This document shows, piece by piece, positions 14,890 to 44,885 of a stretch of 53,605 bases of DNA (within the stretch, counting starts at the first letter, position 1; each line of letters starts with the position of its first letter). Below the pieces are notes generated by a model that saw only the letters and a list, made by a program, of their open reading frames with translations, ran no database searches and was not told the DNA's origin. The position numbers and the translations under genes were made by a program. The stretch covers positions 1 to 53,605 of the forward strand of contig MCFH01000106.1 in the NCBI GenBank assembly GCA_002104945.1, written 5' to 3'. The DNA comes from Piromyces finnis finn. Lineage: Eukaryota > Fungi > Neocallimastigomycota.

Positions 14890-15254
14890 TGTAATATAAC
14901 TACCATTCCTTTATCATTACATCATACAAATAATGAAATTATCTTAATGGTTAGTAACTAAGACGTTAGTCCAAATGTCTTGAGTTCGAGACTTTTAAAT
15001 TACTTTTTTTATTTATTTTTATTTTAATTTTTTATTTTGATTTTTTATCAACTCGAAATTCTTTGATTGGTTAAGAAATTTAAGTTGTAAAAAATCTTTT
15101 AGATTAATTTTAAAAATTTTTATATAAATACGAGTGGATTTTTCTAAATAATTTTAAAAAAATTGAGTTTTTATTAATTAATAAATTATTGTTAAACACT
15201 AACCTATTAAGTTAAAATTTGTGTGTTTTTAATAATAATTTCAAATATTAATAA
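14890..15254 (+). mobile_element. Truncated LTR related to the element E LTR, carrying an A/B-box module
   Basis: TGTAA start; A box 14940-14950, B box GTTCGAGAC 14984-14992; shares GATTGG, TATAAATACGAGTG, GAGTTTTTATT and TTAAACACTAACCT blocks with 35524-35932. Confidence 0.65.
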
Positions 15255-16014
15255 TTTTTTTTTTTTTTTTTTTTTTAACGGCATCAAATATTTTTAAACT
15301 TTATTATTAATTTAATTAAAATTATAATACATGTTATAAAAAATTAAAATAAAATAAAATAATAAAAAATATGTTTAAATAAACGCAAATGAATAAAAAT
15401 TGGGTATAATGTATTCTAGTAATTTTTAAATTAAAGTAAGAAAGCCACTATTATACTAAAGTATAATAATTGTATTTGACTTCCAATGGGACATGGGACA
15501 CCGAGTCAACGACCAAAATTTTGTCATTTGTCATGGGACAAAATTATGATCTCCATTGGTTGCGCTGGCCCTCCTGGCCTGTCTTACTGTTTCTTCAGCA
15601 TTGACGCTCTTGGATGTTGCTTCAAACCTTTTGAACATTGACCATTGCTGGCCAATAACAAAAGGCATGATTTTGGTTAGAAGTTCCGCTGTTACCGTCA
15701 AGAATGGTGTTTTTTCGCAAGTGCCCGATTGAGTCTGACTCTTGCAAAGTTCTTTCCATTCCCTTGAATTGCAATTGATATTGTTAAAACTTCTTCCCCC
15801 AAGAAGGAATTTAAATATTTTACTGCACACACTAGAATAATCATACACATTAATATTCACCTGATTATTAGAACTATTACTATTATTAACTAAATTACTA
15901 TATAAATTAGAATTATTATCTTCACTATTTCTATTACTACTATTATTACTACTATTGTTAAAATTATTATTATTATTATTATTGTCATTATTATTATTAT
16001 TATTATTATTATTG

Positions 16015-16070
<56 letters not shown>

Positions 16071-16071
16071 G

Positions 16072-16109
<38 letters not shown>

Positions 16110-16169
16110 GTCATTATTATTATTATTATTATTATTGCTATCTCTACTGATATCAACATCTTCATTATT
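15255..16169 (-). mobile_element. 3' end of a LINE (poly-Asn region, C-terminal ORF2 segment, 3' UTR, poly-A tail); inferred continuation of the LINE at 29310-34034
   Basis: Minus-strand frame open NNEDVDISRDS(N)n...IFKFLLGG...HNFVP* ending at 15531; poly-A at 15276-15255; joins in frame to ...NSDSPI at 34034. Confidence 0.6.
15960..16140. repeat. (AAT)n microsatellite with GACAAT interruptions (poly-Asn in the LINE frame)
   Basis: Directly visible tta/att trinucleotide array. Confidence 0.95.
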
Positions 16170-16468
16170 ATCTGAAGTGGCTAAATAAAAAATTCAATTT
16201 TCTTTCATAATTATTCTTTAAATTAATTAAAAATTACATAAAATGAATCCCGTGATAAAATACAATAAATATTTAATTTTTCGAATATTCGAACTTATTC
16301 TTTTTCGAATAAGTTCTATAAGTTTCTATAAGTCATAATTTAAATTGTTAAATAAATAATTTAAAATAAAATATAGATCAGGGTTTGAGTCAAACCCGAG
16401 TGATCTAGATTGATGTCTTAAATACTAACCATTAAGAAAATATTAATTTTCTAATAGATTCTGGTACA
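16170..16468 (-). mobile_element. 5' half of an LTR (element C family) with an A/B-box module
   Basis: Colinear with 44599-44885; A box 16439-16429, B box GTTTGACTC 16395-16387. Confidence 0.85.
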
Positions 16469-17844
16469 CCACATTCAGAAAAATGCAATAAATCCATATA
16501 TTTGGTAAATGAAATAACCCTTATAATATATATGAATTTAAATATTTTTATTTAATAAATATATATAACGATAGTAATAATAAGAATGGTAAATTAAATT
16601 AATAACTTATAAATAATTTATTAAAGTAAAATAAACTTTTTATAATTTAATATAATGATGATAAAAATATAATTATATAAGGAAGAGAAATACGCGTATA
16701 TATATATATAAAAAAAAGGGAGTTTTTAGTTTTAATTAGTTTTAGTTAGTTTATATTAGTTATAAATAAAATAAAGATAAGGTGATAATAATAGAAGAAT
16801 AAATAATATTATTGTTAGATTTAGTGAAGGAATTAATAATAATATTAGTTTATTTTCTAAGATTATACCTATTTTTAAAACAAATAATAATATAAATAAT
16901 AATAAATAATACTTATAAATAATAAAATTTGTAATAAAATAATAAAGTAATATATAATAAAAATTATTCATCTAGAATATAAATTTGTTATTTATAACTG
17001 TTGTAGTGTCTTAAATAATAAATAAAAAGGTACTTATAATAAAATTCTGTACCAATTCTGTGTAAGAATTAATAATTATTTATTGAACAATTATTAATTC
17101 TTATTTAATTATTTTTTAATTATTAAATTAATTATTTATTTAAACTATTAGCATACATTCATTTAAATTACTATACACATTTATTTATATTAATATTAAT
17201 TATTCATTTACTTAATTTAAAATTTATTTAATTACTATATTAATTATTTATTTATTTAATTTAGTAATTTATTTAAAATGATAGTAAACATTCATTTATT
17301 TTATTAATTAATAATTTTTGTATTACATTTTATAAGAAACATTTTGTATTTTATTTTACGTTCGTATTTTATGTTTATGTATCGTATCTTGAAATAACTT
17401 ATAGAAACAATTAGAAGATATAAATAAATATTAGGACAATCGGGTATTAAGGTTTTTCCGAATTTTATTCGGTTTTACTTGATATTACGATGATTGATAT
17501 ATTAGTTATCAATCGAATATCTTTTCTGGTTTTCTTCTAGTCTTTTCTAAAAAGATTATTTGTTAAGATTAGAAATTCTTTATTAAACTTTAATTTATTA
17601 AAAAATTATAAATAAAAGAACTCTGGAATTCCACTAAAGAATCCAGAGTTATTATTATAAGAACTATTATAAGAAATAACCTTTATTTAAAACATTTTAA
17701 ATCAAATAACATTAAAGCTTTGTGTTGTTTATTATATTTCCTTATAATAAACTCTTATTTCAGATAAGTACAAAATTTTATTTATTTTAATTTCTTAGTT
17801 TAATAATATTAATTATTATTAAATTGTAGATAATAATTATTATT

Positions 17845-18120
17845 GTGAAATAAATTTAATTAATAAATAATTTTATTCATAAGGTTAACAAAGAGAAAAA
17901 GTTACATTGTAAATATTACAGTTATATAATGATATTTAAGGTCATGTGACCATAGAAAATAAAATAAAATAAATAAAAAATAACTTTCTCTACAACACGT
18001 AGACATTACGTTTACAACACTTTTAATACATGTTTGTGTTTTTATAAAATAGTCACGTGTGTAATAAATATATGATATAGATAAATAAAATTATGTGTCC
18101 ATAAATGTTCACAATTATTA
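17845..18120. repeat. Unclassified dispersed repeat; pieces recur at ~24690-24810 (direct), ~24930-25020 (inverted) and ~44886-44928
   Basis: Shared blocks CGTAGACATTACGTTT..., ATTATGTGTCCATAAATG and AAGGTTAACAAAGAGAAAAA... Confidence 0.6.
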
Positions 18121-19610
18121 TATTATTATTATATAATATATATAATGATAATTATTACATTCTGATAAATAATGAAATTAATAAATGTAAAATTATTATT
18201 AAACCTGAATTTTAAGTTAACCCTAAAAGTAACTTAAAATAAGTTATAGTTTAATTAATTACTTTACCAAAATTCTAAAATAAAATTAATCCTAAACACT
18301 GCATATATTCTAATTATTGAAAGAAAATAATAAACTTTAATTAATCGAGATCAAAATATATAACTTTTGTTAAATTAATTATAAAATTAAATATTTAATA
18401 ACTTCGTTAGTAAATTACACTTTAAAAGTAAACAAATATAATAATCCATGTTATAAAATAATATAATTATACACTTTTATTAAAATATTAAAAATAGTTA
18501 TTACTTTAATTAATTGTAAAATAAACAATTTTTTATATTCTTTAACTTTTAATTATTTCTTTTATTTTTATTTTAATTACTTTTATTACTTTTATTGTAA
18601 ATAGTTATTAATTTTATTATTTTAATGTAAATAGTTTAAAATTAAAAGAAAATATAAATACATGTAGATATTCTTATTTTAATCATCATCATTATTATTA
18701 ACAAAAGAAATATTATATAACTTAGTTAATGTTTTTATAATTTTAATAATCACTTTTATAATTAAATAAATAAAATTTTAAATATTTAAATATTAGAAAA
18801 ATGAGTGTTTCTAATAAAACAATTTAGTGTTTTTTAATAAAACAATTTTATTAATTTTTATAAAAACAATTTTAAATTCTAATTCATATAACTTATATAG
18901 TTATAACTTAAGATATAATATAATAATCACTTTTTGGAGTAAAATTCAAAATTAAGATTATTATCAAATTATATCAATGGTCCTTCGAACCAGAGAATCA
19001 AAATAAGTGTAAAGATATCAAACGCCACAGATTGATATCTTTAATGTAACTTAAGCCATAAATATTATTGTTTAAGTTACACGAATTATATTACAGAAAA
19101 AGAAAATGGGACATAATTTATTTTTAATGTTTAACAAATAAATTAAAATTCTCAATTCAAATCCCTAGTTTTAGTATTGTTTTGTAATAGAAATAGACAT
19201 CTAGTATATAATTATTAAATGTTTAATATATCAATAATACATGGACACATATTCAAATTGAATAGTACTTAATTTGAATTGCCAATTGTATTTTACTAAA
19301 AATAGTTATAGTTTAAATATTTATTAATAATTAAGATTTTAGTGTAGATTTTAAATAATAATATATAAGAAATAAATAGTTATAATATAATATAAATGTA
19401 TTTAGGAAAAATATAAATAGAAGATATTTTTCATCATTTTATCGATGTAATTGTTATTAATAAAATTTCTATTATAATAAAAGATATTTTTAATAAAACA
19501 ATTTTATTTAAATCTTTAGTGTTATTGTAATAGAATAGATATCCTAATCTATTCTTTTTGTGTCGACTTTACAATAACAATTACCTAACATACAAATAAG
19601 AGTACGTTAG

Positions 19611-19727
19611 GATATCTTGGATAACTACTGATATCTTTTGGAACTACCAGATATTTTGGATAACTACTGATATCTTTGTAAACTACCGGATATCTTGGAT
19701 AACTACTAGTGTCTTTGTGAGCTACCA
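19611..19727 (+). repeat. Three tandem 39-bp repeats in the element D leader
   Basis: GATATCTTGGATAACTACTGATATCTTTTGGAACTACCA and two variants; each unit is a dimer of ~19-20-bp subunits. Confidence 0.9.
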
Positions 19728-19906
19728 TTTTTATAAATTTATTCTATTATCTTGCTCGACACTGTAACATACAGAGAGAGTTTGAAGCAACGTTTTAGTA
19801 TAGATTTTTCTTTAGTTACTTTGAATTAAAAAAAAATTACTTGCTTGTAATAGTAGCAGGAAACAATCGGTAATCTTAATTTTTCATTTAGTGTCTAGTT
19901 GGTGAA

Positions 19907-23655: not shown

Positions 23656-23691
23656 ATTAATCTCGCAGGAGCTCGACTTATAGAGAGAGAT

Positions 23692-25273: not shown

Positions 25274-25770
25274 TGTAAAAGGTTTATTATATATTAGTAA
25301 ATAAGTTAATGTTAAATAATAAGTTAAATAAGTTAGTTATCAAATCTCTATACGAGTTAATAATTAATTAAAATTTTATAAAAAATAATAAAAGAACTAA
25401 AATAATTGTTATAATACAAAAATAAATATAAATAAATATATATTAATATGAAATATTACCTACTTAAATAATTAATTTTTATTATTATCTTTTATTTATT
25501 AATTATAACTATCTACATTAATTATTATTATAGTTATTAATTTACTTTAATACTAACGCTAAAGTATTTAACGTTAGTTTATACTATACTATTTAACTAT
25601 AATAGTTTATTTACTAAATCACTTGATTGGGTGAAGTAAATAACCTTTCTATTTAATTAATAACCATTAATATATGGTTATGCATATTTCTGGTAATAAA
25701 TGTTAACCAGAATATATGGTTTCATTTGAAATATTTGTGGGCAAACTTATGGCCACAAATATTTCTTACA
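25274..25770 (-). mobile_element. LTR of the TGTAAGAAATATTTGTGG family (no TSD)
   Basis: Reverse complement of 42150-42646 and 41652-42145. Confidence 0.85.
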
Positions 25771-27309: not shown

Positions 27310-28869
27310 ATGAAAAATATATTTTTGATAAGGTTGTATTTTTAAAATTTATAATATATATTTATTTATATAATTAATTTTTTTTTTTATTTTTTTAGGT
27401 TTATATTTTTTATTTATATAATACAAAAAATAGAAATAGTAAAACCTACTTATATTGAATTAAATGGAAAAAGGATTAATAAAAAAACAATAAATAGTAA
27501 TGATTTACCTAGAAAACATAAAAGTTCAGATAATTTAAATTTAAAGAAAAATGTGCAATTATTTAAAAAATATAATGAAACGAATTACAGAAACGGAAAG
27601 GATTTAATTTCTGTAAATATGAGTAGATTAAGCAATTCAATTTTTTTTCATACAATTATTTCAGAGAAAGAATGTTTATCGGAAACTCTTTCATCAATAT
27701 ATTTTATGAAAGGATTTTTAAGAGATATCTGTTTAAAAGAAAAATACTACAATTTTAAAGATATTTTAAGTTCAGATTATGTATCTAAACCATCATTTGA
27801 ATTCTATAATGAAAAGTTATTCTATTATTTAATAGAAAATAAAGGATTTAATGAAGGTTATTCTCGTTTAAGAAACACAAAAAAAAATGTTGCAGTATTT
27901 AATTTGTTTTGGTCAAAGAATTATGGAGCAATTTTGACAGCATATGCATTACAAACAATTTTATTGAAAATGGGATATAATCCATATTTAATTAAATATA
28001 CAAATAAAAAGTTAGTTGAAAAAAATACAGACCCTTTTTGGAAATTTGAACAAGAAAATTTATTTTCAAGCAAGAATATAATTAATTTCAATGATTTAAG
28101 TTTATTAAATAAGTATTATGATAATTTTATTGTTGGTAGTGATCAAATTTGGCGTTATAAATATACTAAACACTTATATAAAACATATTTTTTATCTTTT
28201 GTGGATAAAAATAAAAAAAAAATAGCATATGCAGCTAGCTTTGGAAAAAATTATTGGGAAGGAAGGAAGAAAGTTACAAAAAAAATTAGAAAAAATATAA
28301 GAACGTTTGATGGTATATCAGTTAGAGAAAAATCCGGAATTAAGATATGTAAAAATACCTTTAAAGTGAAATGTAAAGCAGTTTTTGACCCTGTATTTAT
28401 TATGAAGAAAAATGACTGGAAAGCATTATTAAAAAAATCAACAATAAATTTAAATTCATTCTGTCTAATATACATATTAGATGAAACATTTAAATTAAAT
28501 AGTCAAATAAACATTATTATAAAAAGTTTAAATATCACTGGATATTGGTTAAATATAGGAAATACAAACGTATATGATTTTTTAAAAAGTTTTCAGTCTT
28601 CACAAAGAGTTATAACGGATTCTTATCATGGACTTTGCTTTTCTATAATTTTTAAAAAAGATTTTATATGTCTAAATAACAAAGGAAGAGGAGAAGAAAG
28701 ATTTATATCATTATTATCCGATTTAAACCTAATGGATAGATTATATGATGATTTTAGTGAGGTTAAATGGGAAAATTTACCACCGATTGATTATAAAAAA
28801 ATTGAAAATATTATTGAAGAAAAACGAAAAGAAGGCATCGATTTTTTACTTTCAAATTTAGAAAAGTAA
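27310..28869 (+). CDS. Polysaccharide pyruvyltransferase family protein (PS_pyruv_trans-like) with a predicted short first exon and N-terminal hydrophobic anchor
   Basis: Motifs NYGAILTAYALQ, IVGSDQIW, IAYAASFG, ISVRE, FDPVF, ITDSYHG. ATG at 27310 plus a GT..AG intron (27336 or 27333 to 27398) splices in frame to give MKNIFLIR(L)FIFFIYIIQKIEIV... Confidence 0.85.
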
Positions 28870-29309: not shown

Positions 29310-32300
29310 CCCTTAGGGAACGGGCCTTCATTTATTTTAATAAATGAGGTTTCTCAAGCAGCTCTACTTATGCTCATAGTACTGAGCGAGTAGAAAAAAT
29401 AATAAATAAATCTAATCATTGCTCAATGGATGCTTGGTTAGTCTTTATTGGTAAAAATGTAAGGACTAAGCTCATGATACTGAGCGAATTAACACTTTTC
29501 CATCGAGTATTAGTTTATTAGATGGATAAGTTGAATGTTTGATATTCAGTTAAGTTTGTTTAGCATTTAATTAGAAGAGTAATACATTATTGTTGCTTAA
29601 TTTTTTCTTTTAATTCATGTAGGTACTACTCTTGTAAGAATTCAATGTAGTCAACTTTAGCATTTGCATTGTATTTTTATATTCATGTAACTATTGTTGA
29701 ATTGTTTCCTGTAAGAGATTGATTCACTCTACATCATGTAAAAATACTATTAACAATCTTTCTAGTGTCGACATTCAATTCCGATTTAAAGTTTTACCAA
29801 TTTAAATATTTATGAAAAGTAAAGTCAAATAATTTTTAGTGTCAAAAAGCGAATCGAATTTACTAACAACAAACCAAAACTAGAATTTACAAAGAAAAAT
29901 TACAACTTCAAATTCAAAAAAAGAAATTATAATCAAAGCATTGAAACAATTTTTTGTACTATCCAGTACTTTTTTAAGAAGAAAGATACAGTTTTTTTTC
30001 CCATTATATTTATAATTATTTATTAGTTCTTATTTTATATTCAATTTATTTTTTAATTAGAATTAATTATCATGTCCGTCCTTTATATCAAAGATAAGAA
30101 TTATATCAGACGTGGTACCCGCTCTTATGGTATCCCCTTAGATAATATTAGATCCTTCTTTATCCGTGGTATTCGATCATGGTCAGTTAGCAAACTATGG
30201 GAAAAACTCGAGGTTATTCTGAAGGACAATTTTAATTCAGTTATTAGTGTTAAATATTTGAAGAATTTCAATGATCACTTTTTCTTAGTCAAGGTTCATG
30301 GTTCAATGAAAGACTGTTATAATATTTTACACATCTTAAGGAAGAAACTTTCAACTGCCAAAATTTCCTTTTCAGCTCGTAGTAGAAGGAATCACAAATA
30401 CACTTTTTCTTCACTCAAACGTAAATTTTTAGTTTCCAATAAACAACAACAAACAATTCAACAATCAACTCAACAATCATCTCAACAATCATCTCAACAA
30501 TCTCATCAACATTCAGATCTTCAACAAGATCTCCAACATGAATATACTCCAGATCTACAACAATCACAATTTCAACCTCATCATTCAACAATTAATTCTG
30601 ATAGTTCTATTAACTCCGATAACAATTCAGTAGTTGATAGTTCATCAATTACACCGCCATCTGATAATAGGTCATCTAATTCCTCTGACACATCATCCAT
30701 TAATAACGATGACAATAATAATAATAATAGTTATAGCAATGATTCTTGCTCATCCAACAAGCCCGATAATTTTTCTTTCTGTCTTAGTTGGAATACCAAT
30801 GGGTGGAATCATGAGAAGAGAGATAGCATTAGCTATTTCACAGCTATTTTTAAACCATTATTTTTATGCTTTCAAGAAACTGGGAATGGTTCTGGATCGA
30901 ATACAGAGTATCCTTGTCGTGTTACTTTACGAAATTATAGACACTTTTTCAAGAAAGCTGATGAATCAGTTCCTGGAATGAGAGGTTTATATTTAGGTAT
31001 TCACAATTCGTGTCAAGCCTCACTTGAAAACTTCTTAGGTAAGTATATTATCTCTATTTATACTTTTAGCCTTTGGAATAGATTCAAATGCTCGATTGGG
31101 AATGTTTATATGCCTCATAGTCATCACAACATCTATGTTGATCATGCAAAGTTAGAAGTTCGCTTGTGGTTACAAACTCACTCATCTCATCCATCGATTC
31201 TTGTTGGTGATTTTAATATGTCCAAAGTAAAATTATCCAACTGGTTATCATCTAATGGATTAGGAGATTGGGAAGTTCTTCCACTCAAAGGTTCTTCTAT
31301 CTCTTGGACTCGGGGTGATCAATCTTCCGACATTGATCACGCTCTTATCAACTCGAAGATGAAAGATCTTATTCACTCAGGATCATTCATAAATGATTTT
31401 TATCCTGTTTCAGATCATAAGCCACTCCTTATTAATGGTAAAGTTATTCCTATGGATGATTTTTCTAATGACTTTAGTGTTATTAAGAAAATTCTGAAAT
31501 GGAATAGATTAAAATGTATTGAGGAAAAGAAATCTATTCTCAGTCACAATAAATTCCAAATACTTTCAGCAAAACTCAACGATTCTAATTTTTCGACAGA
31601 TGAACTCTCCAAAGAGTTTACTTCAACTGCTTTTTCAATTGCAGACGAGTTCAGTATTACTTCTGTAAATAATATTATAAAATCGTCATTTCATATTTCA
31701 CAACAAATTTTTAATCTTCAGAAAATCAAAATGAAGCTGTATAGGAAATTTAAAAAAGAAAGAATTTATGATATAGATGAATTGATTAAAAGGATTGAAA
31801 TTTATCATAAGCTCATTAACTACATTCATAAAAAATGTAATGAGTACAGGAAACAAGAATATCTTCATTGGATTAAACCAGGTTGTGAGTATATGAAGAG
31901 TCATAATCCTAAGAAAGCTTGGAAATGGATCAAGAAAACAGCGAAAATCGGAAAAGATACTTTCTTTACTGCTCAACCTATTAAAAATAAAAATGGAGAT
32001 TTAGTTGTTGCTACGGAAGAACAACTAGAGGTATGGCATGATCATTTCGAAAATCTTGCATCTGATCCAAGTGGTGCAAGTCTTGACTTGGAGCAATGGT
32101 ATGAAGAACCAACGAATAAGCGTTTTTCACTCCCTATGCTTGAAGAATGGGATATCAATCAAGATATTAGTATTGATGAAGTCAAGTCAGCTATCCTCTC
32201 TACTCCTAATTATAAAGCATCAGGACCGGATGGTATTCCTATTGAATTTTTCAAAGCATTAATTCCTTCAAGTAATGATTCTAATAATGCTACTGATAAT

Positions 32301-34034
32301 AATTCTTCTGGTAATGCCACTACCGATAATAATGCTCATGGTTTAAACTTTATTCATAAATTATTCAACCGTATTTGGGACGGAGACTTCCCCAGCTCAT
32401 GGAATGAATCCAGTATTGTTTCTATTCCGAAGAAGGGTGATTTGACAGATTGTGATAACTACCGTGGTATATCGCTTATCAATAATGGTATTAAGTTGAT
32501 TTCCAAAATTGTCACCACTAGAATTTCAGAATATGGTCTTAAGAACAATTTCATTAGACCGGAACAATTTGGTTTTCGAAAAAAGGAAGAGAGTATCAGT
32601 CTTTTCATCTCAATCCAAGAAATATGTCGTAGACGTCAATTAGATAATAAAGAGACATATTTGGCCTTTTTAGATCTTAGGAAAGCATACGATTCAGTCC
32701 CAATCGGTAATATCCTACATAAATTAGATTGTTTAGGAATTAGAGGTAAGAGTTTACAGTTCCTAAAAAAATTATATCTAACATCTAAGGCTAATGCCAA
32801 ATTAGATGGACAATTCTCGAAATCTTTTGATGTGAAGAAAGGAGTCCGTCAAGGTTGCCCACTTTCTCCAATTCTCTTTAATCTCTTTATTAATGATATT
32901 TTTTAAGGGTGCGAAGATCTTGGAGTCAGTTTAGGAGGCATTCGATGCTGCGGTGGACTATTTGCAGATGATATAGTTATTTGTGCTCCTACAAGATGCT
33001 GCTTAAAAAAGTTGCTTAAAAAAGTTAACGAATGGGCGATGTATAATGAAATGGAATTTGGTATCAAAAAATGTTCAACGATGGTGATTCGTCCTGAATC
33101 AGTTGAAAATCAGAACAAGAGAGATCCAACATTCTACTTGGCAGGACAACCCATTCCAACTACTGATTGCTACACTTATCTTGGTGTTCCATTTGATAAG
33201 AATTTGTCTCTTAAACCAGTTATTAAAGCTCTTAATAATAAGGTTTTGAAAGGACTTTTTTCAGTCAGTAAATTCTTAAGAAACCCTAATATTCCTATTC
33301 CTTTTAAAAAGCTAGTACTTAACTCACAAGTGATCAGCAGAGTTTCGTACTTTGCACCATTACTTGGATCCAATAAAGCTAGGTCTAGAATTGCTCAGAA
33401 GCATGTTAACAAAGGAATACGGTGGGTTGCAGGAGTTCATAAAGCTGTATCGTTTATATCTCTATATTCTATTTCAAAAGATTTGGGTATTCCTCCATTG
33501 TCAGCCAAATGCGCATTAGCTCAGGTTAGATGTTTTAACAAGTGGAGAAACTCAAATTATATTATTTCACACCTTGTCAAGTACATTCCTAAATTTAGAA
33601 AATATACATGGTGCAAATCAAGTAGGACACTTGATAAAAAATTAAAGAAGCATGGAGATGTTAAAGCAGTTAAAAACTTTTATTTGAAAGATCTCAAAGG
33701 AAAATCAATCAAAGCTCAATACTATGACGATAATAAATTTATTGAAACTAAAGACTTTATTAAATTATGCTATGAGTACCCAGAGTTTGCCTATGGTTTC
33801 TACTGGCTTTTGAAAGCAAGAAGCGGATACAAGTTGGATGCTAGAGTTGCCAAAGCCGCTAAATTCGTTGATCCAGTTTGTCCTAACTACTGTCCATGTT
33901 GCAAGAGTGGAGATCAAAGTATTAAACATTGGTTATTAGATTGTCCAACATTTAGAGATATACGTATTAAATATTATGATTACATAGTCCAACTATTAAA
34001 TCTTTTCAATCAACGTAATTCCGATAGTCCTATC
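29310..34034 (+). mobile_element. LINE (APE-RT) copy 1: structured 5' UTR plus one long ORF, broken at 34034
   Basis: Homologous to 50273-53605; ends abruptly against an LTR half. Confidence 0.92.
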
Positions 34035-34040
34035 ATTTAG
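30072..34040 (+). pseudogene. LINE ORF: RRM-like N-terminus, Q/S/N linker, APE endonuclease, RT, CCHC finger; one in-frame TAA at 32904-32906
   Basis: SWNTNG, FQET, VGDFN, IDH, SDHKP; NYRGISL, QFGF, LDLRKAYD, GVRQGCPLSP, FADD; CPCC...HWLLDC. ORFs 30072 and 33012 share a frame. Confidence 0.92.
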
Positions 34041-34235
34041 AAAAAGTATAAATAGAAGTGATTTGAATCAAAAAATTAAATAGTGTGTTTTTATTAACTT
34101 GTAACTTTAAAATTTAAAATTAAAAATAATTAATAATAAAAAAATTTATTCTAAATAAAATTAAACAAAATTTATCAACCTATAGGGAAATAAATAATAT
34201 TTTCTATATAAATTTTTATATAAATACACGTTACA
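34035..34235 (+). mobile_element. 3' half of an LTR (element C family)
   Basis: Reverse complement of 44376-44600; ends CACGTTACA; begins where the half at 16170-16468 stops. Confidence 0.85.
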
Positions 34236-34238
34236 ATT

Positions 34239-35523: not shown

Positions 35524-35932
35524 TGTAAAGAACTAATGTTCAATAAATAAAAACACAAATATATAAAAAGGAAAATAATAAAAGCAAATAAAAATTTTAT
35601 TATTGAACACTTAACAAAATTATAACAGGTTAGTGTTTAATAATTTTATTTTTATTATAAAATTTCTTTGTTAATAAAAACTCGAATTCCAAATAATTTT
35701 TTGAGAAATTTCACTCGTATTTATATAAATGTTTTTAAAAGTAAATTTATAAAAATTTTACAACTTAATTTTTTAAGCCAATCAGAAATTATCTTCTTTG
35801 GTAAAATTTCGTTATAAAATATTTTAATAATTAAAAAAAAGATATTAATGAGGTTTCGAACTCGAGTAGTTCAAACCAAGGTCTTAGTTACTAACCACTA
35901 AGACAGGTTACTAATTTCTATGATTCGTTACA
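35524..35932 (-). repeat. 3' LTR of element E with a tRNA-like A/B-box module in U3
   Basis: TGTAACGAATC...CTTTACA; A box TGTCTTAGTGG 35905-35895, B box GTTCGAAAC 35861-35853, T8 run 35840-35833. Confidence 0.92.
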
Positions 35933-36029
35933 TGGTCCTCCTCCAGGATTCGGATACCAGACGAATCAACTAAATTTATTTGTTACTTTATTATAAAAGA
36001 AATAATTGAAACGAGTGAATACATTTTGA

Positions 36030-36072
<43 letters not shown>

Positions 36073-36176
36073 TGAATATTAAATTATAAATATATTTTTT
36101 CATTTTCTATTTTCTATTTTCTATTCTCTTTTTCTCTTATCAATTACTAATTTTTTTTTTAAATTAATAACTATTA

Positions 36177-39100
36177 CTAATGTGAATTATTAAAGTTGTT
36201 AATTAGTTCATCGCAGTTTAAATTACTTTCAGGTTCCCAAGATGCTTCTGAAAGCGGATAACCTTTACATTTTATTAGATATTGAATCTTCCCATAATGC
36301 TTTCTTTTATCAAGTATTTCTTCTACTTCGTATTCTTCTTCTTCATTTACTATTATAGGTGGAGGTGGATCTTTGATTCTTCCAAAACTATCTTCATAAT
36401 ACGGTTCTAGGTTTGAAACATGAACAATTGGGTAAATCTTCAGCGATTTTGGTAATTCTAATTTATAAGTGAGATTAGAGATTTTACTAATTATCCTAAA
36501 CGGGCCAAGTTTCCTAGGATTAAATTTTTTATTTCCTTTATGAATTATCAAGGAGCTATCCAACCATACTTTGTCACCAGTCTTGAATGTCGGAGGTTCT
36601 TGTCTATACTTGTCGGCGTATTTCTTTTGAACTTGGATGGCCTTCTTTAAGTTTTCTTTTAGTTTCTCCATTAGGTCTTCAAAGTCTCTTGTAAATTCTT
36701 CAGCTCTTGGAACATTCGTTTGGTCAGGAATTACCGGAGAGTATTTTGGGTGATAACCATAATTTAGGAAGAATGGTGAGAATTTTGTTGAGTCTTGAAC
36801 AGCATTATTGTAACTGAATTCTGCCAATGGAAGAAAGTTGATCCAGTTTGTTCCTTTATAATTAGAAAAGCATCTTAAATATTGTTCAACAACGGAGTTT
36901 ACCCTCTCCGTTTGGCCATTGGATTGATGATGATATGGTGAAGAATATTTAACATTGACGTCCAAAGATTGGCAAATAGATTTCCAAAATTTCGAAGTGA
37001 ATTGCGCGCCTCTATCGGAAATAATTTCAGAGGGGAGACCGTGAATTTTGAAAATATAATTCAAAAAAGCAAAAGCAGTATCAGAAGCAGAAGGAATACC
37101 TTTAAAGGGAATGAGGTGGCACATTTTAGTAAGGCGGTCAACTACAACAAGAATAGTGTTAAATCCATCCGAAGGAGGGAGGTCAGTAATGAAATCCATA
37201 GAAATAGAAGCCCAAGGATGGTCACTAATCTCAAGGGGTTGAAGTAAACCATATGGTTTATGACGAGAAGGCTTGGAGCGGCAACAAATCTCGCAAGATC
37301 GGATATAATTCTTAACATCAATAGAAATGGATGGCCACCAAAAGTCACGAGAGATCAAAGAAATAGTTTTGCGGATACCAAAATGACCGGCAGAGGGGGA
37401 ATCATGACAGAGTTTCAAAACGGAGGGACGGCATTTTAAAGGGACATAGATTCTATTATCAAAAAGAAGAAAACTATTACTAAGAGAGAATTTATTACTT
37501 TGTGGATGTGGAGCTGGGAGATTCTTATTTTCAAGAAAATTGCAAATGTCAATGTAAAAAGAGTCGTTCACATATTCAGATAATATTTCATCATTAAGAG
37601 AAGAAATGGAACAAATCAAAGCGCAGAAATTCTCAGGGCGTAAAACCGAAAAAGGAGCATCAGAAGGAAGAGAGGAATCTATATAATCAGGTCTTCGTGA
37701 AAGCGCATCAGGTTTACCATTTGATGAACCAGAGCGGTAGAGAATTTTAAAGTTAAATTCGGAAAGGAAAAGGGCCCAACGAACGAGACGTTGTGACATT
37801 TTTTCCGGTTTCTTTTGATATAGTAAGTTTCGATGATCTGAATAAATAGTAAACGGGGTTAAAGCACCTTTGAGAAAATGTCGCCAAGTCTCAAGAGCAT
37901 TAACAATAGCTAAAAGTTCTTTATCGTATATAGGATAGTTTCTTTCAGCGGAAGTAAGAGATCTTGAATAGAAAGCGACAGGATGGATCATTTTATCATC
38001 AGGAGATTTTTGAGACAGAACTGCTCCTATAGCAAAGTTGCTAGAGTCGGTTTCAACAATAAAGGGAAGATCACGATTTGGATGAGACAGGATGGGAGCA
38101 GATGAAATTAATGATTTAATGGTATTAAATGCATCAAGAACTTCAGAGGAAAAATCAAATTTAACGTTTTTACGAAGTAGTCTGTGAAGGGGTTGTGCAA
38201 CTTTGGCAAAATTAGGAATAAACCGACTATAGTAGTTGGCTAGGCCAATAAAAGATTGAACTTCCTTGACACTGGACGGAACTGGCCAATTAATAATAGC
38301 AGAAACTTTATTGGGGTCCATATGTACACCTTCAGAGGATATCCGATGACCAAGGAAATCAATAGAGAAAACAAAGAATTCACACTTTTCAAGCTTAGCA
38401 TAAAGACCAGCATTTCTTAAGCGATCCAGGACTTCGATAACGTGCTTAATGTGGAATTTATGGTTTTCAGAAAAAATAATTAAATCGTCAATATATGAAT
38501 AAACAAAAATCCCTAGAATATTTTCCAGAACATCATTGATAAAATGCTGAAAAACAGCCGGGGCGTTTTTCAGTCCGAATGGCATTACCAGGTATTCAAA
38601 GTGGCCGAATTTGCAGGTGAAAGCTGTTTTATATTCATCACCCTTTTTGATTCGGACCAAGTTATATGCTGATCGTAAATCCAATTTTGAGAAGATTTTC
38701 GCTTTACCAAGATGCTCTAGCATATCTTGAATCAGAGGTAGAGGATAGGAATCTCTAATGGTAATTTTGTTGAGTTCCCTATAATCTTGACAAAGACGGA
38801 GTTCACCATTCTTTTTAGGGACGAAAAGTACAGGCGCACCAGCAGGAGATTTGGATTTCCTAATGAAACCCTTTTTGAGGTTTTCATCGATATAATCCTT
38901 CAAAACTCTTGTTTCTTCGTCTGTTAGTGGGTAGATTGGTCCATAAAATAGCTTGGCATTTTCGATTAGGTTTATTTGGCAATCATAAGGACGATGAGGT
39001 GGTAATTGATCAGCAGAAGATTCGCTAAAGACGTCCATATATGATTCTAATTCCTTCGGAAGTTTAGTAATAGGATTTGAGTCTTTAAGAGAGTTTTTTG

Positions 39101-40541
39101 GTGAATAAGAATCAACTTTAGAAAGAGATATATTAGAAGCCATGACAGTACAAGTCTCTTGTGATAAAGGATCGTTAACAGATTCATTGTTAATTAAGAC
39201 GGATTTAGAACGATTTTCTTTGGGATTACGAGAATGAGATAACTTAGAATTTGAAAAAGAAGATTTAGGTTTGTCAATAAAAATAGGCAAAGAAACGGAA
39301 GAAGAGATATTGCAATCAGTAGAAAAAACAGAAGTTTCCTGATGGAATTCGGGAACATTTGAAGGGAGAGTCATACAATGATCCAAGCAATATGAAGAAC
39401 CAAAAGATAATTTATTATTTTCAAAGTCAATACTTGGGTTATGTTCCTTAAGCCAACGTAGACCTAGAATACAAGGATATACAGGTAGATCAGTAACGTA
39501 AAAGACAGTACGGCATAGGTGATCCATGTAGCGAAGATTAAGAGGTGGAGTAACTCCGAACAGTTTTTGGCTACCACCAATACCGAATACGTTGGGTAAA
39601 TCTTCTTCATAGTGGTAGGGAATATTGTGATCGTTGCAATAGTCGACATCTATTAGATTAAGTGTAGAAACGGAGTCTATAAGAATTTTTGTGTCTAGTT
39701 CAAACGATAGTTTAAAATTTGAGGTTACCCTATCTTGTTGATTTTTCTTGGAATTGGTAGAATTATTTTGTAGAGAAACTAAAGATTCGAATGCTGAGTT
39801 TTTATTTCTTCTCTTATGACAATCTTTCAGTTGGTGTCCTGGAGATCCACAATAGACACATAAGTTTTCCTTACTTCTTCTTTCTTTTTCTTCCTTGGAT
39901 AACGGACCAAAGTATCTTTTCTTCTTGGGATGTTCTTTTAGATTTGTGGAAGCCTTTCTGGAGCCATTGCTGGAATTAGAACTTGGTCCCTTAGAATTTT
40001 TGTCAAAAAATAATCCCCTGGTAGCAAGTCTGGAGTCTATTCTAGCTGCAATAGTTTGGAGGGAAAACAAATCTCTTGGTCCTGGGAACATCTCTAATAT
40101 CTTCATTGCAACTTCTTGGTTGAGCCCAGCGATAAAAGCATCCATCTTAGCCTCTTCATTCCAGTTAGATTCATCAGAGTATTTGTTAAATTCAAGGATG
40201 TATCCTCTGATGCCGCCCAAACGATGTTGCTTGAGAGTACGTAGCATTTGATTGGCTACGTAGACTGCATCATTGTTCCCATAGAACGCCTTTAGTCTTT
40301 CCTTGAATGCTTGGTAGTTGGTCAGACATGGATCATGGTTGTCAATAAGCGTAGCGGCCCAATTTAATGCATTTCCATAAAGGCGAGAAATCAAGTAGAT
40401 AACCTTGCTCTCTTCATCTTGATATCTTTCGGGATAAAGGAGAAAAACAAGTTCTATTTTGGCTAAGAAACCTTTGAGATATTTTCTGTCTCCTGCGAAA
40501 CCGTCTTTTAGTGAGGCGTTATCAAATATTTGTCCTTCCAT
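36177..40541 (-). CDS. Gag-Pol polyprotein, 1454 aa, with chromodomain; protease motif reads DSV instead of DSG
   Basis: CVYCGSPGHQLKDC; ILIDSVST; YIDDLIIFS; CHDSPSAGH..CEIC; DFIT/SDRGAQF/TERVN; [12 protein letters not shown]. Confidence 0.96.
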   Translation of the reverse strand: MEGQIFDNASLKDGFAGDRKYLKGFLAKIELVFLLYPERYQDEESKVIYLISRLYGNALNWAATLIDNHDPCLTNYQAFKERLKAFYGNNDAVYVANQMLRTLKQHRLGGIRGYILEFNKYSDESNWNEEAKMDAFIAGLNQEVAMKILEMFPGPRDLFSLQTIAARIDSRLATRGLFFDKNSKGPSSNSSNGSRKASTNLKEHPKKKRYFGPLSKEEKERRSKENLCVYCGSPGHQLKDCHKRRNKNSAFESLVSLQNNSTNSKKNQQDRVTSNFKLSFELDTKILIDSVSTLNLIDVDYCNDHNIPYHYEEDLPNVFGIGGSQKLFGVTPPLNLRYMDHLCRTVFYVTDLPVYPCILGLRWLKEHNPSIDFENNKLSFGSSYCLDHCMTLPSNVPEFHQETSVFSTDCNISSSVSLPIFIDKPKSSFSNSKLSHSRNPKENRSKSVLINNESVNDPLSQETCTVMASNISLSKVDSYSPKNSLKDSNPITKLPKELESYMDVFSESSADQLPPHRPYDCQINLIENAKLFYGPIYPLTDEETRVLKDYIDENLKKGFIRKSKSPAGAPVLFVPKKNGELRLCQDYRELNKITIRDSYPLPLIQDMLEHLGKAKIFSKLDLRSAYNLVRIKKGDEYKTAFTCKFGHFEYLVMPFGLKNAPAVFQHFINDVLENILGIFVYSYIDDLIIFSENHKFHIKHVIEVLDRLRNAGLYAKLEKCEFFVFSIDFLGHRISSEGVHMDPNKVSAIINWPVPSSVKEVQSFIGLANYYSRFIPNFAKVAQPLHRLLRKNVKFDFSSEVLDAFNTIKSLISSAPILSHPNRDLPFIVETDSSNFAIGAVLSQKSPDDKMIHPVAFYSRSLTSAERNYPIYDKELLAIVNALETWRHFLKGALTPFTIYSDHRNLLYQKKPEKMSQRLVRWALFLSEFNFKILYRSGSSNGKPDALSRRPDYIDSSLPSDAPFSVLRPENFCALICSISSLNDEILSEYVNDSFYIDICNFLENKNLPAPHPQSNKFSLSNSFLLFDNRIYVPLKCRPSVLKLCHDSPSAGHFGIRKTISLISRDFWWPSISIDVKNYIRSCEICCRSKPSRHKPYGLLQPLEISDHPWASISMDFITDLPPSDGFNTILVVVDRLTKMCHLIPFKGIPSASDTAFAFLNYIFKIHGLPSEIISDRGAQFTSKFWKSICQSLDVNVKYSSPYHHQSNGQTERVNSVVEQYLRCFSNYKGTNWINFLPLAEFSYNNAVQDSTKFSPFFLNYGYHPKYSPVIPDQTNVPRAEEFTRDFEDLMEKLKENLKKAIQVQKKYADKYRQEPPTFKTGDKVWLDSSLIIHKGNKKFNPRKLGPFRIISKISNLTYKLELPKSLKIYPIVHVSNLEPYYEDSFGRIKDPPPPIIVNEEEEYEVEEILDKRKHYGKIQYLIKCKGYPLSEASWEPESNLNCDELINNFNNSH

Positions 40542-41249
40542 TAAAATTAAAAAATATAATTGTTTGAAAATAAAAATTATGTAAATAAGATAAAGTTATG
40601 TTTGAAGAAATTAAGAAAGAAAAAAAAAAAAAAAATTAAATCTTTATTATTATTTATTGATTAAAATATTTTAAATATAGACAAAGAGTCAAATTAAATA
40701 GTATTGGACCATCAAATATTTAATTTTATTAGTATTCAATACTAGGTCCCTTGTAGCTCTTTGTTGATAACGTAGATATTATCAATTGTTAATATTGGAA
40801 ATGAAAATTTTCAATAAAAGGAATTAACGGTATTAGTTTCTTTATTGTCACTTACTTAATTAAGCGGAAAGAAAAAAATAGGTTTAATTCCCCGATTATT
40901 AATAATATCTAAACAACAAAGTATTACGTATAGGTGTCCAACTATCCACGCTAAGGGAGTTATTGAATCCTAACTTCTTTGTTATTTTATTATATTTTTC
41001 AAAAAATAATAAATAAAATTTAATTTTATTTATTAAAAGTAGAAAACGTTTTATTAGAAAATGAATTTTTTCTTTATTATTAAATTAAGCGTCCTGGCGC
41101 TCCCCTTATAATAACTGTGGGTTTTACTTTTGTTTTCAGTACCCTTATTGTTAAAATAAGCTTCACTGACTTACTTAATTTTTTAATAAATTAAAAATTC
41201 TTCCTTTTTTAAACACTAAGGTGTTATTATATATTTTAGGAGTTTTTAT

Positions 41250-41650
41250 TGTAAAGAACTAATATTCAATAAATAAAAACACAAATATATAAAAAGGAAA
41301 ATAATAAAAGCAAATAAAAATTTTATTATTGAACACTTAACAAAATTATAACAGGTTAGTGTTTAATAATTTTATTTTTATTATAAAATTTTTTTGTTAA
41401 TAAAAACTCGAATTAAAAATAATTTTTTGAGAAATTTCACTCGTATTTATATAAAAATTTTTAAAAGTAAATTTATAAAAATTTTACAACTTAATTTTTT
41501 AAGCCAATCAGAAATCATCTTCTTTGGTAAAATTTCGTTATAAAATATTTTAATAATTAAAAAAAGATATTAATGAGGTTTCGAACTCGAGTAGTTCAAA
41601 CCAAGGTCTTAGTTACTAACCACTAAGACAGGTTACTAATTTCTATGATT
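41250..41650 (-). repeat. 5' LTR of element E (terminal bases displaced to 42647-42657)
   Basis: Direct repeat of 35524-35925; A box 41630-41620, B box 41586-41578. Confidence 0.92.
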
Positions 41651-41651
41651 T

Positions 41652-42145
41652 TGTAAGAAATATTTGTGGCCATAAGTTTGCCCACAAATATTTCAATTGA
41701 AACCATATATTCTGGTCACCATTTATTGGCCAGATATATATAACCATATATTAATGGTTATTAATTAAATAGGAAGTTTATTTCCTTTACCCAATCAAGT
41801 GGTAAAGAAAATAAACTAATATAGTTAAATAGTGTAATTAAAACTAACGTTAAATACTTTAGCGTTAGTATTAAAGTAAATTAATAGCTATAATAATAAT
41901 TAATGTATTATAATTATAATAAATAAATAAAAGATATAATTAAAATATAATTATTTAAGTAAAAGTTATTTCATAAAATATTTATATAAGTGTTTATATT
42001 TATTTTAGTGTTATAATATTTATTTTCTTTCTTTTATTATTTTTTATAAAACTTTATTTAGTTATTAACTCGTATAGAGAGGTAATAACTAACTTAATTA
42101 ACTAATTAGTAACTTATTAACTAATAATATAAAAAACCTTTTACA
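41652..42145 (+). mobile_element. Solo LTR (later insertion), TSD GATTT
   Basis: TGTAAG...TTTACA; GATTT at 41647-41651 and 42146-42150. The TSD includes the first base of the neighbouring LTR. Confidence 0.88.
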
Positions 42146-42149
42146 GATT

Positions 42150-42646
42150 TGTAAGAAATATTTGTGGCCATAAGTTTGCCCACAAATATTTCAATTGAAA
42201 CCATATATTCTGGTTAACATTTATTGGCCAGAAATATGCATAACCATATATTAATGGTTATTAAATAAATACAAAGTTTATTTACTTCACCCAATCAAGT
42301 GGTCTAGTAAATAAACTATTATAGTTAAATAGTATAGTCTAAACTAACGTTAAATACTTTAGCGTTAGTATTAAAGTAAATTAATAGCTATAATAATAAT
42401 TAATGTATATAATTATAACTAATAAATAAAAGATAATAATTATAAATAATTATTTAAGTAAATAATATTTCATATTAATATTTATTTGTTTTATATTTAT
42501 TTTTGTGTTATAATATTTATTTTAGTTCTTTTATTATTTTTTATAAAACTTTATTTAGTTATTAACTCGTATAGAGAGGTAATAACTAACTTAATTAACT
42601 TGTTATATTTAACCTATTAACTAATATATAATAAAAACCTTTTACA
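42150..42646 (+). mobile_element. Solo LTR (earlier insertion), same family, TSD TGATT
   Basis: TGTAAG...TTTACA; TGATT at 41646-41650 and 42647-42651. Confidence 0.88.
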
Positions 42647-42653
42647 TGATTCG

Positions 42654-44129
42654 TTACAGTCCATAAAAAAGTTTAGAGTCCGGCTTAAGACGGATTTCAC
42701 AGTCGTATTGCCTATGAGGCAGCAATTGTTCAGCGGCTTTTTCATTAAATACATCTTCAAAGGCTTGAAGTTCAGCAGGAAGAATAACTTCTTTATTGTT
42801 TGTAGGCTTGATGGTGGAATCGTGATTTTTTGGAGGACTTTTTGTTAAATCATGGATATAAGAATTTGTTGAAGTGCTACAAGAAGGTTTGGAATCATTA
42901 GAAATAGAAGAAATAACATAAGTAGGGGCAACGTTAGGAATAACAGAGTAATGTGACAGACAGAAATTTGAATTAAAAGATAATTCTTTTTCAACGAAGT
43001 TAATATTAGGGTTGTGTTGATGTAGCCATTCAGAACCTAAGATGCCGCAATATCCCGGAAGGTCTACGATATAGAATATAGCTTTACATTGGTGGTTTTT
43101 GTATTTGATCGAAATTGGGATAGATTTACCTAAGATTTGTTGTTCCCCACCAATGCCGGAGATTTTGTTGAAAGAGACGGATTTATCAAAAGGAATATTA
43201 TTTTCTTCGGCAAAGACCACATCTAGTAGGTTAAGTTGGGATCCTGAATCAATTAGTAATTTAGTATTCACGGAGACGTCGGAAGTATTGAGTTGGAAAT
43301 CAAAGACTGGCTGTTTCAGATTGGGGTTATCGGAGAATCTTATTCTAGGCTTCTTTTCAGGCATAGTGTTAGAAATATGAGTCCCAGCTGATTTTTCATT
43401 TTTATTTCTTTTTGGGCAGTTATTTAACTTATGATCAGGAGAACCACAATACAGGCAGAGATTTTCCTTAATTCTTCTAGCTTTTTCTTCTGAGGAAAGC
43501 GGTCCATAAGTTTTCTTATTTCTAGAAGTGCAAGGTTTTCTATTTGCTTCAGTTCTTCGGTTTTGAGTAGTGTTAATAGAATGATTGTTGTTGAAAAATC
43601 TTCTATTGGTATCGATTCTAGAATCGATTCTTGATGCAATAACTTGTAAATTTAGCAACGTTTGTGGACCGGGAAACATTTCTAAAATCCTATTGGCGAC
43701 TTGATCTTGTAGTCCAGCTAAGAAGGCATCCATTTTCGCACTTTCGTTCCAAGAAGAGTCATCGGAGTATCGGTTAAATTCAAGAATATATTTTTGAATC
43801 TCACCGATTTTCCTTTGCTTTATAGTTCGAAGTTTTTGATTAGCCACAAACGTTGAGTCGTTGTCACCAAACACAGATTTAAGCTTGGCAACGAATGAGT
43901 CATAATTTAGTAGGCATTCGTCATGGTTGTGAATTAATGATGCAGCCCAATTTAAGGCTTCACCATATAGTCTCGAAATGATATAAACAATTTTTGCTTC
44001 GTCATCCGCGTAACGCTCTGGGTAGACCATAAAGATTAATTCTATTTTAGCGAGAAAACCCTTAAAGAAACGACGATTTCCAGCGAAACCATCCTTCAAT
44101 GTAGCATTATTCATCAATTCTTCATCCAT
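42654..44129 (-). pseudogene. Truncated Gag-protease (element C)
   Basis: Homologous to the N-termini of elements B and E; CLYCGSPDHKLNNC; LLIDSGS; ends ...SKLFYG at the element E LTR. Confidence 0.9.
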
Positions 44130-44885
44130 TTTCTTTATTTTATTTTATTGATAATATCTAATTTTAATTTAATTTAATGAGTATAATGTATCCAAAAGAA
44201 TCCAAAAACAAAATCCAAAAGAGTCCAAAAGAGTTCAAGAGAGTTCAAGAGAGTTCAAGAGAGTTCAAGAGAGTTCAAGAGAGTCCAAGAGAGTTCAAGA
44301 GAGTTCAGTAAGTTAAAAAAAAAATATAACAAATTAATCAAGGTAAAGGGAATATGTTACAACCGGTGTTTTTATTGTAACGTGTATCTATATAAAAATT
44401 TACTAATATATGAATTAATAAAATTTATATAGAAAAATATTATTTATTTCCCTATAGGTTGATATAATTTGTTTAATTTTATTAGAAAATTTTTTTATTA
44501 TTAATTATTTTTATTTTTAAAAATTAAAGTTACAAGTTAATAAAAACACACCATTTAATTTTTTGATTCAAACCACTTCTATTTATACTTTTTTTAAATC
44601 TGAAGTGGCTAAATAAAAAATTAAATTTTCTTTCGAAATTATTCTTTAAATTAATTAAAAATTACATAAAATGAATCCCGTGATAAAAATACAATAAATA
44701 TTTAATTTTTCGAATATTCGAACTTATTCTTTTTTCGAATAAGTTCTATAAGTCATAAATTAAATTGTTAAATAAATAATTTAAAATAAAATTTAGATCA
44801 GGGTGTGAGACGAACCCGAGTGATAGATTGATATCTTAAATACTAACCATTAAGACAATATTAAATTTCTAATAGATTCGTTACA
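42658..44885 (-). mobile_element. 5' part of Ty3/gypsy element C, truncated by element E
   Basis: 5' LTR 44376-44885 with A/B module (44857-44807); self-priming PBS 44375-44366 vs 44549-44540; gag-protease ORF cut at the start of RT. Confidence 0.88.
44221..44307. repeat. 10-bp tandem repeat (GAGTTCAAGA)n, ~9 copies, in the element C leader
   Basis: Directly visible. Confidence 0.95.

Follow-up and report, generated by a model that had tools for sequence, protein, structure and literature searches.

Background

Helenus elements are short, non-autonomous TRIMs (miniature terminal-repeat retrotransposons) with tRNA-like long terminal repeats (LTRs), and have been grouped with the Cassandra elements as 'TRIMp3' (Kojima 2024, PMC10886601). 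The same study remarks in passing that 'not a few' LTRs in Repbase resemble part of a tRNA, and reasons that autonomous partners, which must use RNA polymerase II (Pol II), should not share such LTR sequence (PMC10886601). Up to now, tRNA-like LTRs were known only from tiny non-autonomous TRIMs, i.e. Helenus. A different relation to the RNA polymerase III (Pol III) machinery is that of Ty3, which uses TFIIIB to insert itself 1-4 bp away from the start site of Pol III, a position ~12 bp upstream of the mature 5' end of the tRNA (PMC5006619); DGLT-A and Tj1 behave similarly (PMC5006619, PMC4600332). Both relations come together in a contig of the gut fungus Piromyces finnis (MCFH01000106.1, assembly GCA_002104945.1), analysed over its full 53,605 nucleotides (hereafter the window), in which autonomous chromoviruses carry a short module at the start of their LTRs.

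Here, I show by sequence comparison that this module has the A box, the B box and the tRNA-like spacing of a type-2 (tRNA-type) internal Pol III promoter, that the boxes and their spacing are under constraint, and that the module is hit by tRNA-gene-specific retrotransposons at the distance equivalent to that seen at tRNA genes. The first ~100 nt of the U3 part of these LTRs are probably a piece derived from a tRNA or a short interspersed nuclear element (SINE), decayed to the point of having lost its cloverleaf and retaining a tRNA-type internal Pol III promoter that still works.

Results

A probable tRNA-type promoter module in chromovirus LTRs

The motif TNTCTTARTGGTTAG occurs exactly at five places in the window, namely at 14940 on the plus strand and at 16439, 35905, 41630 and 44857 on the minus strand, against 0.14 matches expected; five matches were reached in none of 100 shuffles. 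These are the five A-box copies of the original prediction, located where it had put them and belonging to three LTR types (C-like, D and A), and the B-box-like cores that it had listed are likewise in place (Table 1), at the spacing of 44 nt, which a 2-bp deletion has shortened to 42 nt in one copy. In the 56.46 Mb assembly of 232 contigs, to which all genome-wide counts refer, TCTTARTGGTTAGTA has 272 exact copies and a control pattern has none. Four LTR families with the module are present in this genome, named A to D.

The carrier that is preserved from LTR to LTR in the window is a chromovirus, with reverse transcriptase (RT), RNase H and integrase in this order and a chromodomain at the integrase C-terminus; its 1454-aa open reading frame (ORF) matches the Pfam domain Chromo (E=2.6e-13) along with RVT_1, RT_RNaseH, Integrase_H2C2, rve and SH3_Tf2-1. 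This family-A element has a Tf1-like self-primer arrangement, and the polypurine tract GGAGGAGGA precedes its 3' LTR.

The original prediction had also given the distance of the A box from the LTR 5' end. This part holds for the copies at 35905 and 44857, in which the A box starts at LTR nt 28-29, and falls for those at 14940, 16439 and 41630, where the true LTR start is absent and a foreign LTR end is found instead, 18-22 nt upstream of the A box; the distance is therefore meaningful solely for the first two. Further into the LTR, by 110-280 nt, lie the CCAAT-like (GATTGG), TATA (TATATAAATA) and self-primer sites, in agreement with the prediction. The expected T runs are present as well (four to ten T, 10-25 nt past the B box); such runs are frequent in a genome of ~80% A+T, and they therefore carry little weight.

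Conservation of the boxes and of their spacing

Of the ten LTR families compared, four belong to this genome. The other six were taken from relatives with polyprotein homologues 58-72% identical, on contigs that derive from JGI and ENA metagenomes plus two NCBI assemblies (one close homologue is labelled Orpinomyces). The first 300 nt of the ten families were aligned, and the mean pairwise identity was taken per region. It amounts to 0.98 at the LTR tip, falls to 0.35 at LTR nt 10-27, rises to 0.78 in the A box, and is 0.63 in the 3' arm of the hairpin that contains this box, 0.48 in the spacer between the boxes, 0.73 in the B box and 0.38 in the remaining LTR. The LTR tip aside, the A-box window ranks first among 332 windows of 15 nt, and 22 of the 25 top-scoring windows of 11 nt include part of the A or of the B box. 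Throughout the ten families the A box has 0-2 mismatches from TRGCNNAGTGG and the B box 1-2 mismatches from GGTTCGANNCC, its GTTC being invariant, and the distance from T8 to G53 is 43-45 nt in all ten. The boxes with their spacing are hence the best-conserved parts of U3, which is the opposite of boxes diverging like their flanks, the outcome that the original prediction had named as speaking against it.

Insertions at the module and at tRNA genes

One of the elements found inserted at the modules, here called X, is a Ty3/gypsy retrotransposon whose full-length copy encodes an 1831-aa protein with protease, RT, RNase H, integrase and SH3 domains and without a chromodomain. X is a position-specific inserter near the Pol III start of many tRNA genes, and it makes a 5-bp target-site duplication (TSD). 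Its end occurs ~230 times in the genome, and 73 distinct contexts of this end were examined: twelve are the interior of X itself; ten are real tRNA genes of eight isotypes (three for Arg, two for Trp, and one each for Gly, Glu, initiator Met, Cys and Ser), each preceded by the X end at 11-13 nt from its mature 5' end; eight are chromovirus LTR modules, preceded by the X end at 17-21 nt from the A-box T8; and two are other tRNA-like A/B-box sequences. At tRNA genes X is found in both orientations, with a bias of ~6 to 1, and the genome-wide pattern counts never found its other end adjoining a module.

A genome-wide count gives 23 modules, drawn from families A-D, that have the X end upstream of T8 at a distance of 17-24 nt (median 20); no fewer than 12 of the junctions are distinct, and the corresponding distance at tRNA genes measures 18-20 nt. 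A case in point is a full-length X inside a family-C LTR, flanked by a perfect duplication (TGTAACGA[ATCAT]-X-[ATCAT]AGAAAT). Since the 5-bp target duplications are perfect, the junctions of X at modules are real insertions.

The window itself preserves a double event. Read along the minus strand, the order is TGTAACG-AATCA (42658-42647), X_a (42646-42150), AATC, X_b (42145-41652) and AAATCATAG..., a layout that two successive X insertions 1 nt apart, with the duplications AATCA and then AAATC, would leave. The LTRs of X_a and X_b are only 91% identical, and the two are therefore separate events.

A sample drawn regardless of X leads in the same direction. Among 41 module copies collected by the A-box motif alone, a polypurine tract precedes 11, the LTR start is intact in 18, and a foreign LTR end lies 18-24 nt upstream of T8 in 12 (29%). 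These foreign ends belong to at least seven LTR families, represented in the window by W, V and X. Four families (X, U, T and R) have been seen both at modules and at tRNA genes, in the latter case 11-16 nt upstream, and almost all tRNA genes inspected have an LTR end at that distance. This pattern suggests that the gut fungus holds a guild of Ty3-like Pol III-targeting elements. There is also a hint that the same targeting takes place outside this genome: in GCA_016295205.1 (locus L066, 700-850) a module LTR lacks its first nucleotides, its A box being preceded at 23 nt by a foreign ...TTTTATCA end.

Some further observations concern the loci involved. The LTR ends upstream of tRNA genes (L031-L060) occur singly or several in a stack and represent at least six families (X, U, T, R, Q and others). 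The genes for tRNA-Glu(TTC) and tRNA-Arg(TCT) form tandem pairs 9-10 nt apart (L033, L035, L037, L038 and L060), which may be dicistronic Pol III units. The two other tRNA-like sequences with X inserted ~19 nt upstream are L077:1391-1500 (minus strand) and L148:61-170 (plus strand), whose A/B boxes read TGGTATATTGG...GGGTTCGACAC and ...TCTGGGTTCGACTCAACC.

LTR families without the module

Families E and F, from the same genome, have similar LTR tips and no module, and served as controls. Intact LTR starts number 84/84 in family E, 50/54 in family F and 198/272 in module LTRs; the loss of the start in the latter (27%) differs from that in families E and F at Fisher p=8e-11. A general hot spot at LTR tips is rejected by these controls: as the starts of E and F are intact, it is not the LTR tip as such that is the hot spot, it is the module.

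The module is not a tRNA gene

ARAGORN reported 0 tRNAs in the window, and an Rfam search gave no match at gathering scores. Even at E<=10 the Rfam tRNA model (RF00005) matched neither the module alone nor the contigs of five relatives (32 kb). Manual inspection of the module showed no pairing in its acceptor, anticodon and T stems. The possibility of a functional tRNA gene was accordingly rejected on the negative results of ARAGORN and of the Rfam tRNA model. Some relatives are more tRNA-like: the minus strand of L066 reads TGGCATAGTGGTTAGAGC, a perfect A box; L181 carries TGGTTCAGTGGTAAC; and L061 combines a D-arm of 4 bp (GCTT/AAGC) with a T-arm in which 4/5 pairs form and with a T run right after a 7-nt acceptor-like stretch. 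For this reason, the module resembles a tRNA or SINE head, decayed everywhere but in the promoter boxes.

Such an origin raises the question of whether the piece is a neutral relic, that is, a tRNA or SINE inserted in U3 which may bind TFIIIC and attract other elements while being useless to the chromovirus. The absent cloverleaf and the tRNA model without a match would fit a relic, an insertion of a SINE has been proposed by Kojima as the origin of tRNA-like LTRs (PMC10886601), and the hits by other elements are a cost to the chromovirus, not a benefit. A functionless piece, however, should decay like the spacer, whereas the boxes and their spacing are what ten families have conserved most, the rest of U3 being nearly unalignable among elements whose pol is 58-72% identical. 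Neutrality is therefore regarded as unlikely.

Hairpins and predicted RNA

The A box lies in a hairpin, and the compensatory change between GTCTTAG/CTAAGAC and GTCTTAA/TTAAGAT that had been claimed for it is confirmed; the relatives add GTCCTAG/CTAGGAC and GCATAG/CTATG. The hairpin is 84% paired, as compared with 22-57% for a slid partner, and three pairs are changed on both sides. As 14 to 50 of 500 shuffles reach the observed values, the support from covariation is modest. RNAalifold predicts a second hairpin, GAAC/GTTC. For the putative RNAs of ~87 nt, three of the four families give folds better than those of shuffled sequence (z -2.1 to -2.9), and the RNA of family D folds no better. Among public runs, the module sequence was found only in Logan contigs of uncertain type, the pieces of which break at repeat borders. 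The conserved hairpin allows a role for RNA or single-stranded DNA. A pairing of the A-box loop GGTTAGT with the ACTAACC of the presumed family-A self-primer was considered and dropped, for the primer of family D (GGTGTGTTTTT) differs and the loop is the same.

A structure used in replication has also to be weighed, in which the hairpin downstream of the polypurine tract would act in the 3' untranslated region (UTR) of the genomic RNA or in minus-strand DNA, e.g. during plus-strand priming or strand transfer, and the likeness to Pol III boxes would reflect origin alone. Pairing, double-sided changes, the second hairpin and the fold scores of the three families all speak for it, and hairpins occupy the corresponding LTR position in E and F too, the families that lack the module. 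It leaves unexplained, however, the invariant GTTC(G/A)A of the B box and the A-box consensus, which L181 keeps in spite of a different stem sequence. Nor does it explain the tRNA-like insertion hot spot, which is absent from E and F in spite of their hairpins, and the fold of family D is no better than that of shuffled sequence. As a replacement for the Pol III promoter this structure is improbable; it would be compatible with that promoter as a second layer.

The family-E chromovirus (window 7882-13319) has no A/B module, and its LTR opens with a hairpin, TAATGAT/ATCATTA, whose loop holds AAGGGTTAGAC; the GGTTAG in this loop is also the core of the A-box loop of families A-D. GGTTAG as a telomere-repeat or Tbf1-like site fails as an explanation of the data, given that family E has it without a B box and is no insertion hot spot. 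Ordinary Pol II enhancer or transcription-factor sites, e.g. Myb/telomere-repeat-like GGTTAG, with a coincidental likeness to the boxes, may draw on this shared loop and on enhancers being usual in U3, and are nonetheless very hard to credit, since coincidence is unlikely for two Pol III-consensus boxes at tRNA spacing in ten families and since 0/84 starts are disrupted in family E, whereas module LTRs are hit where tRNA genes are.

The window

Nested retroelements are piled up across the window, and the G+C content of the intergenic DNA is 16-20%. The LTRs with the module, the chromovirus and the inserted elements are listed in Table 1.

Table 1. Chromovirus, module-bearing LTRs and inserted LTR ends (window positions)
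Feature	Position	Strand	Details
Intact family-A chromovirus	35524-41651	-	LTR to LTR, 6 kb
Chromovirus polyprotein ORF	36177..40541	-	1454 aa; gag, RT, RNase H, integrase, SH3, chromodomain (Pfam)
Family-A 3' LTR	35524..35932	-	409 nt, TGTAACGAAT...CTTTACA; after polypurine tract; A box from LTR nt 28
Module of family-A 3' LTR	35833..35905	-	A box 35905-35891 (TGTCTTAGTGGTTAG); hairpin GTCTTAG/CTAAGAC
B box of this module	35861-35853 (core)	-	AGTTCGAAACC, core GTTCGAAAC; run of eight T (T8 run) 35840-35833
Family-A 5' LTR	41250..41651	-	first 7 nt missing; A box 41630-41616; B core GTTCGAAAC 41586-41578; T run 41565-41559
Severed first 12 nt of family-A 5' LTR	42647..42658	-	TGTAACGAATCA; far side of two X insertions
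Solo LTR X_b	41652..42145	+	end 21 nt upstream of A-box T8; TSD AAATC
Solo LTR X_a	42150..42646	+	earlier insertion, nt 8-12 of same chromovirus LTR; TSD AATCA
Family-D 5' LTR	44376..44885	-	510 nt, start intact; A box 44857-44843 (TGTCTTAATGGTTAG); B core GTTCGTCTC 44815-44807; hairpin GTCTTAA/TTAAGAT
Partial family-D LTR (nt 7-288)	16170..16461	-	A box 16439-16425; B core GTTTGACTC 16395-16387, C56 mutated
Family V LTR end	ends 16462		...GTGGTGTACCA; 22 nt upstream of T8 of partial family-D LTR
Family-C-like LTR fragment (nt 9-340)	14921..15256	+	A box 14940-14954; B core GTTCGAGAC 14984-14992; T runs 14993-14996 and 15004-15010
Family W LTR end	ends 14921		...ATCATTACA; 18 nt upstream of T8 of family-C-like LTR

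Nucleotides 287-466 of a family-D LTR, its missing 3' part, are found at 34035-34216 in the opposite orientation, ~18 kb from the partial family-D LTR, a split that points to a rearrangement between LTRs. At 25274-25770 there is a third X solo LTR (87% identical); its flank resembles the coding sequence of another element, and no recognisable tRNA gene, module or TSD was found beside it. In the 3' UTR of the family-E element a stretch of ~270 nt (12600-12870) is richer in G+C, has a B-box-like GGGTTCGAAGTCG on the minus strand and gave no match in an Rfam search. A non-LTR retrotransposon with endonuclease and RT lies at 30072-32906 and has a copy at ~50744-52142, 80-93% identical.

Among the repeats there are also two ORFs with bacterial-type domains (27553-28869 and 47814-49151), the domains being polysaccharide pyruvyl transferase and MurB-like FAD-binding UDP-N-acetylenolpyruvoylglucosamine reductase. 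Both ORFs are likely to have been horizontally acquired, and horizontally acquired genes are common in anaerobic gut fungi.

Discussion

Taken together, the conservation of the boxes, the tRNA-like insertions and the module-less controls bear out the central claim of the original prediction, namely a tRNA-type Pol III module in the U3 of autonomous chromoviruses and apart from their Pol II promoter. On the same three grounds the module very probably assembles TFIIIC and TFIIIB in vivo and is treated by the cell as a Pol III gene.

The events can be pictured as follows. In the clade of self-priming chromoviruses, the layout is an A box at about LTR nt 28, a B box 43-45 nt further on and then a T run. 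TFIIIC bound to the two boxes would place TFIIIB over the LTR tip (nt 1-20), and, by analogy with Ty3, the integrases of X and of other Ty3-like elements would dock on this TFIIIC/TFIIIB complex. Pol III would initiate near LTR nt 10-14 and yield, in family A, a two-hairpin RNA of ~80-90 nt ending at the first T run.

Several points weigh against this picture. A-box position 10 is T, not G, in families A-D, and C56 or A58 is mutated in individual copies (window 16395 and 44815). Nothing can be read from T runs in this genome, and in families B and D they reach just three to four T (T3-T4). The role of TFIIIC, TFIIIB and Pol III is read from insertions as a proxy, and the way in which X would find its targets, with its integrase tethered by TFIIIB/TFIIIC, is argued from related elements. 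The value of families E and F as controls would be somewhat reduced if, as is possible, they are younger than the families with the module. In addition, the A-box hairpin is conserved, with its modest covariation, and is unneeded for TFIIIC binding; as this binding needs no hairpin, its conservation hints at an additional or different role at the level of RNA or single-stranded DNA.

As to what the chromovirus would gain, the most likely candidates are a TFIIIC/TFIIIB boundary or nucleosome-free region upstream of the Pol II promoter, or a small RNA. In an element that seeks heterochromatin, either of the first two is plausible upstream of the CCAAT/TATA promoter. Regarding the cost, an insertion in the tip of the 5' LTR can leave the chromovirus unharmed, since it falls in an untranscribed part of U3, and an insertion into the 3' LTR would do harm.

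A wider scenario can be put forward only tentatively, being possible and rather doubtful as a whole. TFIIIC and TFIIIB on the mimic would shield the Pol II promoter of the chromovirus in the heterochromatin that it targets; as a by-product, hundreds of mobile pseudo-tRNA genes would become the main landing pads of the tRNA-targeting guild, thereby reshaping the accumulation of its members and sparing the tRNA genes of the host; and such LTRs would, by internal deletion, be the source of Helenus-type TRIMs.

The implications are of several kinds. Promoters of small-RNA genes in LTRs are extended from tiny non-coding TRIMs to autonomous, Pol II-driven chromoviruses, which the Helenus paper had thought unlikely, and module LTRs suggest a possible source of such TRIMs. 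Moreover, the fossil insertions of Ty3-like elements offer a genetic read-out of Pol III factor assembly in an organism with almost no genetic tools. At least 272 mobile mimics of tRNA genes serve as targets, ~27% of them having lost the LTR start, a number that bears on the idea of safe-haven targeting in repeat-rich regions. Along the same line, a tRNA-gene barrier borne by a heterochromatin-seeking element becomes a testable idea.

Regarding novelty, the original prediction stands in part. Literature searches returned nothing on a tRNA-type Pol III module for chromoviruses or anaerobic fungi, in keeping with the claim as far as autonomous chromoviruses are concerned; tRNA-like LTR sequence as such had already been published for the non-autonomous Helenus TRIMs (PMC10886601).

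Helenus is indeed among the closest described systems, sharing with the present elements an LTR with tRNA-derived sequence in which the A box and the B box are conserved. Its own features are an A box TRGCY..YGG, a B box GGTTC, a non-functional tRNA, an occurrence in fungi and 5-bp TSDs (PMC10886601). Helenus elements, however, measure 311-1263 bp, are non-coding and are thought to be wholly transcribed by Pol III, whereas the carrier described here is a 6-kb autonomous chromovirus with an intact 1454-aa gag-pol, whose Pol II promoter (CCAAT/TATA) is separate from the module and lies downstream of it. In fungi, moreover, Helenus is found in Pucciniales and Agaricomycetes and is linked to Copia elements (PMC10886601), whereas the present carrier is a Ty3/gypsy chromovirus. 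The Cassandra TRIMs likewise have the promoter of a small-RNA gene inside the LTR, but this promoter is of the 5S type (type 1, derived from 5S rRNA), and the elements are non-autonomous and live in plant hosts.

X and its companions resemble Ty3 of S. cerevisiae, DGLT-A of Dictyostelium and Tj1 of S. japonicus in being Ty3/gypsy elements without a chromodomain that make 5-bp TSDs and stack 11-16 nt upstream of tRNA genes; they differ from these three in that a promoter mimic carried by another family of retrotransposons also serves them as a target. The reading of Pol III factor binding at non-tRNA DNA from the landing sites of a retrotransposon has a counterpart in the integration profiling with TRE5-A in Dictyostelium that brought cryptic Pol III complex sites to light (PMC5391098), which is an experimental assay and concerns ribosomal DNA, whereas fossil insertions in LTRs are used here. 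Finally, yeast tRNA genes (tDNA), extra TFIIIC (ETC) sites, chromosome-organizing clamp (COC) sites and B-box arrays, which act as chromatin boundaries bound by TFIIIC, have in common with the module that B-box DNA without a functional tRNA gene stands at the edge of a transcription unit in repeats; unlike the tDNA, ETC and COC boundaries of yeasts, the module is mobile and has the full arrangement of A and B boxes.

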